This document shows positions 50,531 through 54,267 of a stretch of DNA of 64,000 nt, piece after piece. The stretch lies in sequence record NC_047815.1; one strand, written 5' to 3'. Every line of letters starts with the position of its first letter. Position 1 is the first letter of the stretch. Position numbers and translations under genes: made by a program. The notes beneath the pieces were generated by a model, which saw nothing but the letters and a program-made list of their open reading frames with translations, made no database searches and was not told the origin of the DNA.

Positions 50531-50715
50531 AAACCGTGAACGAGTTGGTAAAGCAATTAAAGCAGTCCAATTCTATCGTATTAACCGAATCAGTGGCAGA
50601 CAGTGTTCTGCCCGATTTAAAATTCACCCTTGATGTGTTGTGTATGAATTACCGTCTGCGTCAAATCGATACACTCAGCGGAGGGCGCCAGACGAAAATT
50701 GAATTACGCAGTTAA
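50527..50715 (+). CDS. small hypothetical protein
   Basis: ATGA overlap. Confidence 0.65.
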   Translation: MKTVNELVKQLKQSNSIVLTESVADSVLPDLKFTLDVLCMNYRLRQIDTLSGGRQTKIELRS

Positions 50716-50857
50716 CTGAACTACCCTTTGGCCTTACGTTATTTATCCATCCCTCCTGACAGAGGTTGCGTAAGGTCCTTTTTAAAGCGTGTTTTCGAGC
50801 GTGCTTTAAAAAGCTGATAACTAGAAAACTCACCTTCTAGTTGGTACGTGAAAGCTG

Positions 50858-50909
50858 CAAATCTGCGGTCAAAACAGTGCTAGCAACAAGCGAAACGCTG
50901 TGCTACAAT
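50858..50909 (+). promoter_or_regulatory. box-type sigma70 promoter
   Basis: CAAATCTGCGGTCAAAA 50858-74; TAGCAA 50881-86; TGn-TACAAT 50904-09. Confidence 0.8.
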
Positions 50910-50915
50910 ATATGT

Positions 50916-51245
50916 GCAGCATGTCGTGTGCTGTAACATCGAGGAAACTTGCTAGTCTTTGAGTCTCTATCTATATGTGCGGCCATGCACTGATATGAGA
51001 CTCCTTTTTAAAACAGGTTCAATGAGCCTAGTTTAAAAAGCAATTAAAGCCAAGAGACTTCAACCCACTACTTGGTTAGTAACACCTCTGGTGCCAGGTC
51101 GGCGGCTGCATCCCAGAGACTGGGGCCTGGCTCCCTTTTTAAAGCTGATTTTGATTAGTCAGTTTTCGAAAGGGTTCGATACCCTTGAGCGCATTTGGAT
51201 TTACGCGGTTTTCACCAACTGTGCTCTCATATTAAACCGCAAAGG
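50916..51245 (+). ncRNA. candidate structured non-coding RNA / long structured leader
   Basis: ~330 nt with no credible ORF after a strong promoter; at least 7 consecutive hairpins, a T-loop-like arm and a possible pseudoknot. Confidence 0.55.
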
Positions 51246-51253
51246 AAATAACA

Positions 51254-51967
51254 ATGCCTACATTACGCAAACCTCGTCCAGCAGATAAGTTCTCTCAAGC
51301 TCGCGCCGCCAAGAACTCTCCTGAACGTCAAGAAGCAGCCAAGAAGAAAGTGCCACGCGGTCCTAAATCAGCAGGCCCTCGTCGCAATACTGTCCAAGTG
51401 GAACGCGCTGCTACGATACGCGACGAGGACCGTGTTGTAAACCTCGTGCTGTTTATCTTACGTGGTTGGAAACAAGCTAAGGCGGATAGTGAAGCCAGCG
51501 CTGCACAGGGCATCATTAAGGTAAGTCGTCGTGAAATCGAACTAGCTTTACGCGATCTCAAAAACACGCGTTTCACTAAAATCCCGACACTGATTAACGA
51601 TGTGTTGGTCTACAACGAAATCGTAAATGAGTTTGGTCAGTGGGTGTACGTAGAGCATGATAGTCCTGACTGGATGTTCATCTTAACGCCAGATCGTGAA
51701 ACGCTTGTGACACGCTGTCGCATTCGCCGCAATAAAGAGACAGACGACCTGACACAGCTCATATCCTCAGAAGTTCTGTTGAAAGATTGGAGCGAAGAAG
51801 AGGTAGAGATAGACGTCTCAGAAGAAGGCGAGGAGTATCAATCATGGACCCTCAGCCAACTTCAAAACTTTGCTAAAGCCGAAGGTTACATGGGCATCAA
51901 AGATGAAGGATGGAACGATCGTTCAGCACTCATTGCTCGAATCATCAACAAGGGCGCAATCAAATGA
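51254..51967 (+). CDS. protein with basic N-terminus and C-terminal Rho-N/HeH-like helical module
   Basis: AAGGA SD; WTLSQLQNFAKAEG...RSALIARII. Confidence 0.75.
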   Translation: MPTLRKPRPADKFSQARAAKNSPERQEAAKKKVPRGPKSAGPRRNTVQVERAATIRDEDRVVNLVLFILRGWKQAKADSEASAAQGIIKVSRREIELALRDLKNTRFTKIPTLINDVLVYNEIVNEFGQWVYVEHDSPDWMFILTPDRETLVTRCRIRRNKETDDLTQLISSEVLLKDWSEEEVEIDVSEEGEEYQSWTLSQLQNFAKAEGYMGIKDEGWNDRSALIARIINKGAIK

Positions 51968-52647: not shown

Positions 52648-54267
52648 ATGGCACGTCTCGAAACTTCTTCAAACCTGGTTGGCAAATCTATCGTTCTGCT
52701 GAACGGCACCAAAGCTAAAATTGTTGACGCTATCACAAGCGGCTACAAAACTGATAAGAGCGCGAAGCGTATCGCCACTCGCTGCGTTATCAAGAAGGGC
52801 ACTGGTTACGCAGAAATTGAACGTATGCCGCTGACCCAGCTTGTTGACACGGGTGAGGGTTATGTTGAAATCAAATCTGCTGACTCGAAAGCGCCTGCTA
52901 AAAAGACCGCTGCTAAGTCTACAGCAAAAGCATCAACCAAGACCACAACGAAAACTTCCGCCAAAAGCTCAACCAAAGCCGCAGCGAAAGCTGATAGCAA
53001 ACCAGCAGCAAAAGCAAAAGCGCCTGCTAAAACAAAAGCAGCCGCTAAGAAAGAAGAAGCCGAAGCGCCGCGTAGTCGTGTTCGTCGTAAGTCTGCACAG
53101 CCGACTACTTTGACCGCTATTGATCAAGAGTTCACCGAAGCTCTGGTGATGCGTGTTGTTGAGCATTTGAAATCAGGCAATCTGCTGTCACTTGCTACTG
53201 ACGGTGTTACGCCGATTGATAACGCGTTTGAAGTTACTTATGATGCGCAGTATGCAGCGCCGAATCAATTGCAGTTTACTATCGGTGTTGAGTATGCGAT
53301 GCCGCAGCAAGCCGCTGCAAACGATGCAGTAGAAATCAGCGCAGAAGTGCTGGAGCGTGCTGCTAAGAAAGTCGGCAAGACCATCGGCAAGAAACTTGCT
53401 GCTGCTATCAAGTCTGCGTACGGCGTAGACAGTGCGAAAGACCTGCTTGCTGGTACCGTACTGCGTCACGGCGATGATGAATTCATCTATATCGGTGCAA
53501 GTGCTGCCGACGCTGATAAAGCGTATATGTACAACGCCGAGTCTGATAAGTTTCGTGCAGTAGCCGCTGCTAATCTGTCTAGCTATGAGCTGGTGGCTGA
53601 CGAAGAACAAGACGAAGACGAAGAAGAGGAAGAAGAAGACGACAACGCTGACCTCGACTTTGAAGACGACGAAGAAGAAGAGGCTGATGACGAAGAAGCC
53701 GAAGAAGAGGAAGAGGACGAGGAAGAAGAAGCCGAAGAAGAAGAAGACGGCGAAGAATCTGAACCTGAATATTCTTATCGTTCAATCTCGAAAGATGAAT
53801 TGAGCCTCGTCAATAAGAAAGTAACTGCTAAGTATGTGGCGCAACTTGCTGAACAGTGGTCGCTTGATGTTGAAGCTCTGGTGCCTGGTCTGATTGTGTC
53901 AGACGGCGAAACCGAGTTCGCATATGTCGGCTTCGACTCTAAAGGCGGTCTGGTAGTTATCGATACACAAGACGGCGAAGCGATGGTCTACGCTAAAGCA
54001 CAGGTTAAATCGCTGACTGAGTTTGCCGCTGTGTTGGGCGACGACGAGACCTCTGACGAAGAAGCAGAAGAGGAAGAAGTTGAAGACGAAGAAGACGAAG
54101 AAGAAGACGGCGACGATGATTTTGACTTCGATGATGCCGACTCTGCTGACCTCGATGATATGTCAGAAGATGAATTGCGTGATAAAGTGATTCAAGCAGG
54201 TCTGACTACCGTACGCAAAGCTGGTCGCATGAACGAAGATGAATTACGCGAACTGCTGGCTGACTAA
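52648..54267 (+). CDS. modular protein: K/A-rich linker, two beta-rich domains, D/E tracts, C-terminal 40-aa helical module
   Basis: GAGGAG SD; composition and internal repeats visible in translation. Confidence 0.85.
   Translation: MARLETSSNLVGKSIVLLNGTKAKIVDAITSGYKTDKSAKRIATRCVIKKGTGYAEIERMPLTQLVDTGEGYVEIKSADSKAPAKKTAAKSTAKASTKTTTKTSAKSSTKAAAKADSKPAAKAKAPAKTKAAAKKEEAEAPRSRVRRKSAQPTTLTAIDQEFTEALVMRVVEHLKSGNLLSLATDGVTPIDNAFEVTYDAQYAAPNQLQFTIGVEYAMPQQAAANDAVEISAEVLERAAKKVGKTIGKKLAAAIKSAYGVDSAKDLLAGTVLRHGDDEFIYIGASAADADKAYMYNAESDKFRAVAAANLSSYELVADEEQDEDEEEEEEDDNADLDFEDDEEEEADDEEAEEEEEDEEEEAEEEEDGEESEPEYSYRSISKDELSLVNKKVTAKYVAQLAEQWSLDVEALVPGLIVSDGETEFAYVGFDSKGGLVVIDTQDGEAMVYAKAQVKSLTEFAAVLGDDETSDEEAEEEEVEDEEDEEEDGDDDFDFDDADSADLDDMSEDELRDKVIQAGLTTVRKAGRMNEDELRELLAD

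Follow-up and report, generated by a model that had tools for sequence, protein, structure and literature searches.

Positions 50916-51253 (+ strand) of the 64,000-nucleotide (nt) stretch of DNA analysed here (the window, from sequence record NC_047815.1), which belongs to the Erwinia amylovora jumbo phage vB_EamM_Yoloswag (KY448244; window position being record position minus 186000), are, with somewhat better than even confidence, the 5' untranslated leader of the mRNA of the gene gp312, which would act in cis by attenuation combined with a translational switch of pseudoknot and alternative-pairing type. The conserved core of this leader, consisting of the hairpin P5 and of a pseudoknot formed at the gp312 ribosome-binding site, points in the sequence comparison to cis regulation. 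The stretch is situated between gp310, which stops at 50715, and gp312, whose ATG is at 51254, and the genes around it are nearly all annotated as hypothetical. In the preliminary description of the window, made from the sequence alone, it had been proposed as a candidate non-coding RNA; the conserved, structured, non-coding and + strand character of the RNA stood, whereas the self-contained RNA gene did not, because the RNA passes without a break into the Shine-Dalgarno sequence and start codon of gp312 and is, therefore, a leader.

Yoloswag is grouped with the PaBG-like 'hairy' jumbo myoviruses, which encode a sigma-70-family factor (PMC6143709; PMC7412058) and for which no phiKZ-type polymerase is described in these two papers. 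No studies of promoters or transcripts in the PaBG-like 'hairy' jumbo phages were found, and in the papers mentioning these phages no promoter, transcript or RNA-motif analysis was met with. There was also no Rfam match and no paper describing the leader RNA, which is filed here as a new RNA family of a known type, namely a structured 5' leader with an attenuator and a ribosome-binding-site pseudoknot.

Folded as a whole (345 nt) and compared with its shuffles, the stretch gave z=-4.58 on the + strand against -2.11 on the - strand. Every stem of the preliminary description forms when folded alone, with z of -2.5 to -4.9 for most of them and with two weak ones (51050-75 and 51093-131). The order of the parts, taken from the alignment and RNAalifold, is promoter, P1, P2 with C(C)U5, P3, P4, P5, a 7-nt linker, a 7-nt box, AAAGGA and ATG. 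RNAalifold predicts P2, P3, P4 and P5, with compensatory changes at 20 of the 41 predicted pairs, so the covariation that had been named as a check on the RNA was found, by RNAalifold and pair counts, for P2-P5. At the position of P1 the relatives have a hairpin of other sequence, which differs between the subclades while the structure is kept. The promoter, the leader and its gene comprise the following parts.

50855-50909, + strand: promoter, with the upstream box CTGCAAA-N5-GGTCAAAA at 50855-74, a weak -35-like TAGCAA at 50881-86 and an extended -10 TGc-TACAAT at 50901-09
50916-50934, + strand: P1, the 5'-terminal hairpin (-7.7 kcal/mol, z=-2.5)
50961-51040, + strand: terminator module 2, found in Yoloswag only, with a hairpin at 50961-51003, CT5 at 51004-09 and an A/U palindrome at 51004-40
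51050-51075, + strand: weak hairpin of Yoloswag alone (-3.6 kcal/mol, z=-1.1), with no homologue for covariation
51093-51140, + strand: P2, a terminator-like hairpin (51093-51131, z=-0.9) followed by TCCC-T5
51133-51175, + strand: P3, whose short form (51141-66, z=-4.9) covaries in relatives
51170-51186, + strand: P4, the T-arm-like hairpin AAGGG-TTCGATA-CCCTT (z=-2.7)
51187-51226, + strand: P5, a hairpin of 12-13 base pairs (bp) with a 14-16 nt loop containing TTTAC-GCGGTTT (z=-2.5)
51205-51240, + strand: pseudoknot between the loop bases 51205-11 (GCGGTTT) and 51234-40 (AAACCGC), with a 7-nt linker
51242-46 and 51254-56, + strand: Shine-Dalgarno AAGGA and ATG of gp312, as read from the sequence
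51254-51967, + strand: gp312, with a basic N-terminus, a conserved core of ~110 amino acids (aa), an acidic tail and a HeH-like C-terminus

The pseudoknot core and its carriers

P5 was found in every member of the family, and in 23 aligned sequences six of its 13 pairs are changed on both sides; in the Yersinia phage fHe-Yen9-02 it is a perfect 14-bp stem of other sequence. The box that pairs with its loop ends 1 nt upstream of the Shine-Dalgarno AAAGGA, and this pairing is kept in 100% of the 23 sequences. For P4, P5 and the pseudoknot taken together, 89.6% of the cells in these sequences are paired against at most 51% with the partners slid, and the covariation score is 0.245 against at most 0.091 for the slid partners, with none of 500 shuffles as high. 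Three pseudoknot variants exist in three lineages and all of them are complementary, i.e., GCGGTTT:AAACCGC, GGGGTTT:AAATCCC and CAGACTT:AAGTCTG. Between the Yoloswag/Alexandra type and the Salmondvirus type (the second of the three), C:G and G:C are swapped at one position, while the loop CAGACTT of fHe-Yen9-02 is the exact complement of the AAGTCTG standing eight bases 3', with four of the seven pairs changed on both sides in comparison with Yoloswag; the chance of a perfect 7-mer complement at this position is ~0.001, which is a rough estimate from base frequencies. The fHe-Yen9-02 sequence stands outside the 23-sequence pair table, its alignment by MAFFT and the covariance model being one column out of register, and its complementarity comes from direct reading. 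The linker length follows the stem length (7 nt with 12-13 bp, 8 nt with 14 bp), and the bases TTTAC of the loop and TCA of the linker are invariant. The arrangement is that of an H-type pseudoknot, in which the loop pairs with 3' bases beside the ribosome-binding site, and covariation supports the pairing.

On the opposite strand, or in a palindrome of the DNA, the G-U pairs of P5 and the pseudoknot would turn into C-A mismatches, and therefore a + strand RNA structure is favoured over the palindrome. This bears on the explanation that the conservation is that of a protein-coding gene or, alternatively, of a DNA-level inverted-repeat operator for a dimeric DNA-binding protein. GCGGTTT and AAACCGC do constitute an inverted repeat in the DNA, and the stretch, which had been described as free of open reading frames (ORFs), has an annotated gene in GenBank, though its ORF is not conserved:

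51091-51288, + strand: gp311 (YOLOSWAG_310), annotated ORF in GenBank with a GTG start, 65 aa

From the comparison with relatives, gp311 of Yoloswag is probably a spurious gene call, because its frame is broken there by a 1-nt indel (CCCTTT in the relatives, CCCTT in Yoloswag) and, in S13 (pEa_SNUABM_13), by a TAA in frame within the equivalent region, because no relative has a coding sequence annotated at this position, and because the protein-family search gave no match. The frame is, thus, not kept as in a coding gene. The gp311 annotation overlays conserved RNA helices. A conserved leader peptide was likewise not found, the small leader ORFs not being kept across the relatives as read from the comparison of leaders. 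Since the helices also contain many G-U pairs, which are mismatched in DNA or on the other strand, and the + strand folds much better than the - strand, the coding or operator explanation of the conservation is scarcely credible.

With the covariance model built on P4 and P5, a single copy is recovered from the window. A structure descriptor run over the window and the initial 50 kb of the genome (the remaining ~146 kb being outside the scan) gave chance matches only, of which the two inspected sit inside ORFs, with no other intergenic instance. A regulon with several element copies per genome was rejected on the basis of this single copy and of the chance-level descriptor matches in these two regions. 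The loop motif as a repeated operator was rejected too, as it occurs once in the window and its near-matches are at the chance level.

Among the closer relatives (Alexandravirus, Rivsvirus, the unclassified pEa_SNUABM phages and Dickeya AD1), only 51134-51260 is conserved by blastn, with 78-91% identity, while the gp312 proteins of these phages are 45-60% identical; the non-coding stretch is, therefore, held tighter than its gene. Further copies were found in the Salmondvirus phages JA11 and JA29 (33-35% protein identity), in IMG/VR and metagenome contigs and in one contig of a metagenome-assembled genome (MAG), where it is mis-binned, and a diverged copy with the same promoter class, a 5' hairpin and the 14-bp P5 was found by the covariance model in Yersinia fHe-Yen9-02. 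In total there are 25 distinct copies (Yoloswag and 24 others), which come from four phage lineages and metagenomes. The leaders of the Salmondvirus type and of the Yersinia phage are without P2-P4 and have an unrelated 5' hairpin with P5 after 3-4 nt, the order in Salmondvirus being the same promoter, 5' hairpin, P5, pseudoknot, Shine-Dalgarno and gene. The scan of genome contigs with the 20-nt loop motif gave 81 matches, which is about the chance number, and one of them, L056, is real by the covariance model; the metagenome scan gave three real matches and one by chance. The profile-based locus searches brought no new lineage, and no relatives of fHe-Yen9-02 were found in the searches. On the 14-kb contig L056 (JAVWLC010000023.1, labelled as a Raoultibacter sp. 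MAG), both a complete leader of the Alexandravirus type (113.8 bits) and the beginning of a gp312 homologue are present, and by this content the contig is almost certainly of phage origin and was binned by mistake into an actinobacterial MAG. The distribution of the element is narrow, comprising one group of Enterobacterales jumbo phages.

The gene that follows the element in fHe-Yen9-02 is gene 215, for which profile comparison shows no relationship to gp312, whereas the true gp312 homologue, gene 212, is without the element. The annotated start of gene 215 (locus L039, 2749-3261) lies inside the 3' arm of P5 and is probably placed 36 nt too far upstream; the ATG at 2785 (MPAINPRN...), which stands 3' of the pseudoknot and of a GAG Shine-Dalgarno-like sequence, is likelier. 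The small ORF 214 (2682-2774) overlaps the promoter and the leader in this phage.

The occurrence of the element before unrelated genes in different phages would also suit a small-molecule riboswitch, with the P5-pseudoknot as an aptamer gating the ribosome-binding site, and a compact pseudoknot beside the Shine-Dalgarno sequence with invariant TTTAC and TCA resembles the small pseudoknot riboswitches. However, no Rfam riboswitch model (preQ1, SAM-II/V, fluoride, guanidine-III and others) matches, the Shine-Dalgarno sequence lies outside every conserved core helix, none of the downstream genes has a metabolic or transport role from which a ligand could be guessed, and the spread of the 25 copies within one phage group is narrow, which makes an aptamer improbable.

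Promoter, terminators and alternative pairings

The promoter that had been noticed upstream of the stretch is real, having an extended -10, a weak -35 and a conserved upstream box, and is one of at least nine of its class. The transcription start is predicted at ~50916. A simple consensus promoter scan did not pick up the promoter upstream of 50916, because its -35 is poor. The upstream box has 13 occurrences in the window, exclusively on the + strand, against 3.1 expected, and none of 100 shuffles had as many. At nine box sites the spacing to a TAnAnT hexamer is the identical 29 nt, with a short hairpin following, and most of them have the extended -10 TGn:

19219, 27741, 34210, 38926, 44368, 49443, 50855, 52319 and 52531, + strand: promoter-class sites of the form CAAA(T/A)-N4-TGGTCAAAA, 29 nt, TAnAnT

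The homologous leaders of all relatives have the identical box at the 29-nt distance upstream, including those of Alexandravirus, Salmondvirus and Yersinia fHe-Yen9-02. By its sequence, the leader promoter is a member of a phage-wide sigma-70-type promoter class with the GGTCAAAA box and the extended -10, and the box could be an UP-like element or an activator site.

Between the promoter and the gene, GC hairpins with a U run, in the manner of intrinsic terminators, stand at 50961-51009 and 51093-51140. The first of them, with module 2, and the weak hairpin 51050-75 are carried by an insertion of ~130 nt (about 50940-51090) in Yoloswag that is absent from all relatives; the module 2 hairpin has -17.6 kcal/mol and z=-4.3 (its stem 50961-51003 folded alone, z=-3.5), and the palindrome z=-4.4. 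The second one, P2, has homologues in the relatives with compensatory changes at 10 of the 12 pairs, which are strong terminator hairpins (z=-5.1 and -5.3) with C(C)U5 directly 3'. Accordingly, two leader terminators are counted in Yoloswag, one in the other members of the Yoloswag/Alexandra/Rivs clade, and none in the Salmondvirus-type and Yersinia leaders. CCTTTTTAAA has exactly three occurrences in the window, all in the region between gp310 and gp312, and the combination of a hairpin, CCTTTTTAAA and an A/U palindrome has its second copy inside the insertion and its third after gp310:

50730-50813, + strand: terminator module 1, 3' of the gp310 stop, with a GC hairpin at 50730-78 (-16.9 kcal/mol, z=-3.3), T5 and an A/U palindrome at 50778-50813 (-13.5 kcal/mol, z=-4.5)

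Because operons elsewhere in Alexandra, in JA29 and in the Yersinia phage close with similar modules, these modules are read, from their sequence, as the intrinsic-terminator form of this phage group. The recurring form is a GC hairpin, T5 and a second hairpin in which a T-run pairs with a downstream A-run (T5A3...T3A5), the latter being possible in the read-through RNA alone; it was seen at 50730-50813, 50961-51040 and 51093-51175 of the window, and at ~870-960, ~880-965 and ~1040-1100 of the loci L005, L037 and L039, respectively. A gene of ~116-123 aa stands between the gp310 homologue and the leader in Alexandra, JA29 and Yen9-02 and is absent from Yoloswag (50716-51253 against 851-1622 in L005 and 848-1500 in L037), where the extra terminator module may be a relic of this rearrangement.

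In the proposed mechanism, the leader terminators would stop most transcripts, so that gp312 would be kept low or delayed and rely on read-through. The short RNAs of ~95 nt and ~225 nt released by termination would be by-products or, possibly, small RNAs. A short trans-acting RNA from the promoter to the leader terminator (the same ~95 and ~225 nt in Yoloswag, ~85-105 nt in the relatives), with the Hfq-type layout in which a 5' hairpin, a single-stranded linker and a terminator hairpin with a U tail follow one another, is compatible with the leader model; the promoter, the 5' hairpin and strong terminator hairpins with U5 are all there, and the layout is common to all leaders of the Alexandra/Rivs/Yoloswag type. 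However, the single-stranded linker, the would-be seed site, is poorly conserved between the subclades, the whole part is absent from the Salmondvirus and Yersinia versions, and no target came to light, no search for one having been made, which leaves such a small RNA unlikely, albeit with an appreciable chance.

As for the leader switch, four segments of the read-through RNA (the U-tract tail, AAAGGG, CCCUUU and the Shine-Dalgarno AAAGGA) would pair in two ways. In the OFF state, the tail would pair with AAAGGG and CCCUUU with the Shine-Dalgarno sequence, while in the ON state AAAGGG:CCCUUU would form the T-arm hairpin P4, leaving the Shine-Dalgarno sequence free. The pseudoknot, by geometric reasoning, would put the Shine-Dalgarno sequence at the far end of P5, excluding the OFF pairing, and it would probably also serve as the site at which a trans-acting regulator, perhaps gp312, docks. 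The alternative folds concerned are the terminator tail CCUUUUU paired with AAAAAGGG (the long form of P3, where CCCTTTT at 51133-39 pairs with GAAAGGG at 51169-75) and the short P3 together with P4; they lie within ~1 kcal/mol of each other in 11 of 16 leaders and are 3.4-3.7 kcal/mol apart in four, including Yoloswag. With the long P3, the pairing of CCCUUU with AAAGG of the Shine-Dalgarno sequence around the base of P5 is predicted in five of seven leaders, and less strongly in Yoloswag. In pEa_SNUABM_35 the tail (CC to UC), the 5' arm of P4 (GG to AG) and its 3' arm (CC to CU) have all changed together, which fits selection on both pairings.

Several points weigh against the leader switch. 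In L056 the P4 stem has changed without a matching change of the tail. The start site, the termination and the read-through are all predictions. The Shine-Dalgarno sequence is invariant (AAAGGAA being nearly so in the alignment), so that CCCUUU:AAAGG is open to no covariation check. Since the Salmondvirus and Yersinia leaders lack the switch parts P2-P4, an independent function has to be assumed for the core pseudoknot; alone, it might bind a regulator or present the ribosome-binding site. The position of the fHe-Yen9-02 element before gene 215 weakens gp312 autoregulation. The conservation of the T-loop sequence is left unexplained by the switch model, and a 7-nt linker over a 12-13 bp stem is geometrically tight. 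A bolder and rather unlikely reading would make the P5-pseudoknot a new class of phage cis-regulatory RNA read by a dedicated trans factor (a protein or a ligand), which in one clade would be extended to the four-segment switch with the T-loop hairpin as an 'anti-anti-Shine-Dalgarno', the host TruB/TrmA, as tRNA enzymes recognising an isolated T-arm, modifying or chaperoning the mRNA leader and thereby tipping the switch.

The T-arm-like hairpin P4

P4 adjoins the helix GAGCGCA/TGTGCTC with a zero-nt junction, and both this junction and the T-arm sequence are exactly as the preliminary description had given them. The 7-bp 'acceptor' of that description is, in turn, merely the base of the 12-13 bp P5 hairpin, whose loop forms the pseudoknot. 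A T-arm of tRNA, with a 5-bp stem, a 7-nt loop U54-U55-C56-R57-A58 and the closing G53-C61, is present in Yoloswag and is not found in every member. The P4 stem covaries, with G:C changed to A:U in S35, L056 and L132 and to U:A in S34/S21, and the changes GG to AG, GG to GA and GGG to GGT are each matched on the opposite arm. Most copies have the loop TTCGATA, and S3 has TTCAATA, where the consensus still holds; L056 departs from it with GTCGATA (G at U54), pEa_SNUABM_34 and _21 have another loop in its place, and in L132 the closing pair is A-U instead of G-C. P4 is confined to the Yoloswag/Alexandra/Rivs clade and absent from the Salmondvirus and Yersinia-phage leaders, and from this comparison it appears to be a clade-specific accessory. 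A tertiary partner for the T-loop was sought by eye in the linker between P5 and the pseudoknot, and nothing convincing was seen.

The checks by Rfam/Infernal and ARAGORN, which the preliminary description had named, gave no tRNA and no family, and the absence of a D-arm and an anticodon arm that it had noted was agreed with. Thus, ARAGORN found no tRNA or tmRNA in the window and in 23 other related loci, and cmscan with Rfam found no family at the gathering threshold or at E<=10, including tRNA (RF00005), tmRNA and the Y-RNA-like models; the sole match was to the c-di-GMP-I model on the - strand, with 15 bits against the gathering score of 66. One of the 25 related loci scanned, that of pEa_SNUABM_13, received an ARAGORN call. 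This 'tRNA-Glu(ttc)' of 95 nt (L002 2436-2530; MZ475891 241695-241789) reads P2, P3 and P4 as D, anticodon and T arms, and it is probably a false call on leader hairpins, because the Rfam tRNA model gives no match there and no sister phage gets the call.

A free-standing tRNA-like RNA, either YrlA-like or a permuted tRNA, which serves as a decoy for tRNA-targeting nucleases or in other tRNA mimicry, would draw on the exact T-arm consensus of P4 (G-UUCGAUA-C, 5-6 bp stem) with no spacer to the next helix, on the P4 loop being nearly fixed within one clade while other loops vary, and on the ARAGORN call at the homologous site of pEa_SNUABM_13. Isolated stem-loops with GUUCNANNC are also substrates of E. 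coli TruB in vitro (PMC13492117), and P4, whose 7-nt loop is closed by G-C and sits on a stem of 5-6 bp, conforms to GUUCNANNC; this match is a lead, not a result. Such an RNA is, however, decidedly improbable with ARAGORN empty in the window and the 23 loci, the Rfam tRNA, tmRNA and Y-RNA-like models silent, the T-loop missing or changed in several family members and not present at all in two of the lineages in which P5 and the pseudoknot persist, and the 'acceptor' helix closed by a loop, engaged in the pseudoknot and without a free 3' end, while the RNA runs on into the gp312 ribosome-binding site. The known anticodon nucleases cut the anticodon loop. The decoy suggested in the preliminary description found no support, there being no anticodon arm as their target. 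On the sequence evidence, the RNA as a whole is not a tRNA mimic, because P2-P4 are missing from the Salmondvirus and Yersinia leaders, the T-loop is lost in some members, and the ARAGORN call is unique and unconfirmed by Rfam.

The same call, with P2, P3 and P4 taken as D, anticodon and T arms in one relative, and the perfect T-arm sequence could make P4 a decayed remnant of a phage tRNA gene retained merely as a hairpin. This is very improbable, since the acceptor pairing is not conserved, P2 and P3 do not have the dimensions of D and anticodon arms, and the loop is under purifying selection in a clade where the neighbouring protein is down to 50% identity. A tmRNA (a tRNA-like domain with a tag frame) was found neither by ARAGORN nor by Rfam. 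A YrlA or other Y-RNA-like RNA is not indicated either, with no Rfam match at E<=10 and with phage hypotheticals as neighbours, and a type III toxin-antitoxin (ToxIN-like) locus does not fit, the duplicated module being in Yoloswag alone, the relatives without repeats and gp312 without a PADLOC match.

gp312, comparable systems and significance

The make-up of gp312 comes from the alignment of 19 homologues, the HeH-like C-terminus being present in some of the phages, and it suits, as judged from sequence, a nucleic-acid-binding protein; gp312 autoregulation is possible for this reason. The core was modelled by AlphaFold2 with pLDDT ~88. The family and fold searches (PHROGs, NCBIfam, PDB sequence search, PADLOC, AlphaFold2 with Foldseek) brought nothing usable, the best fold match being the Stn1 winged-helix domain with E=0.55. 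The nearby gp314 (52648-54267), preceded by the box-class promoters 52319 and 52531, contains a stretch rich in lysine and alanine that resembles histone H1, long poly-acidic runs and, at its C-terminus, a HeH-like motif, to which that of gp312 is similar.

Among the known systems, the T4 gene 32 leader is alike: both are 5' leaders of phage mRNAs with an H-type pseudoknot, which in the family described here is close to the 5' end in the short leaders of Salmondvirus and Yersinia, and both have an A-rich unstructured ribosome-binding region 3' of the pseudoknot. T4 gp32, with a basic N-terminus, a folded core and an acidic tail, to which gp312 is similar in make-up, autoregulates its translation via the leader pseudoknot. 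However, the T4 pseudoknot is ~40 nt upstream of the Shine-Dalgarno sequence against 1 nt in the gp312 leader, stem 1 of the latter has 12-14 bp, neither the sequence nor Rfam shows a similarity, gp312 is without an OB-fold or gp32 homology, its autoregulation is only putative, and the Yersinia copy serves another gene. The E. coli rpsO (S15) and similar ribosomal-protein leaders also have a hairpin loop pairing beside the ribosome-binding site, and the rpsO-type pseudoknots control translation initiation in cis; there, the Shine-Dalgarno sequence and AUG are inside the pseudoknot, whereas those of the gp312 leader are just 3' of it, and no homology exists.

The trp leader and the erm/cat attenuators share with the gp312 leader an intrinsic terminator between promoter and gene and four mutually exclusive pairing segments ending in the Shine-Dalgarno sequence. 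They differ in that the gp312 leader is without a conserved leader peptide and that its terminator decision comes before segments 2-4 are made, and therefore the alternative pairing can act on translation or stability only. P4 has the minimal in vitro substrate form of TruB (PMC13492117), as in tRNA T-arms and T-arm mimics in mRNAs (TruB/Pus4), but it is without a cloverleaf, an elbow partner and an aminoacyl end. YrlA and the bacterial Y-RNA-like RNAs are similar in the T-arm-like hairpin stacked on a helix, while the gp312 leader, as a part of an mRNA, has no Rfam match, D-arm mimic, Ro-binding helix or rsr/rtcB neighbour.

The covariation-supported family, with its 25 distinct copies and three pseudoknot variants, and a defined promoter class are thus obtained for a group of phages about which little is understood. 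If the pseudoknot acts as an operator, there is a regulator to be found, and gp312 would be marked as a tightly controlled gene. If host tRNA enzymes modify P4, the hairpin would be among the few bacterial examples of a T-arm mimic with a function within an mRNA and, were the TruB/TrmA reading true, the phage gene expression would be coupled to the tRNA-modification capacity of the host.

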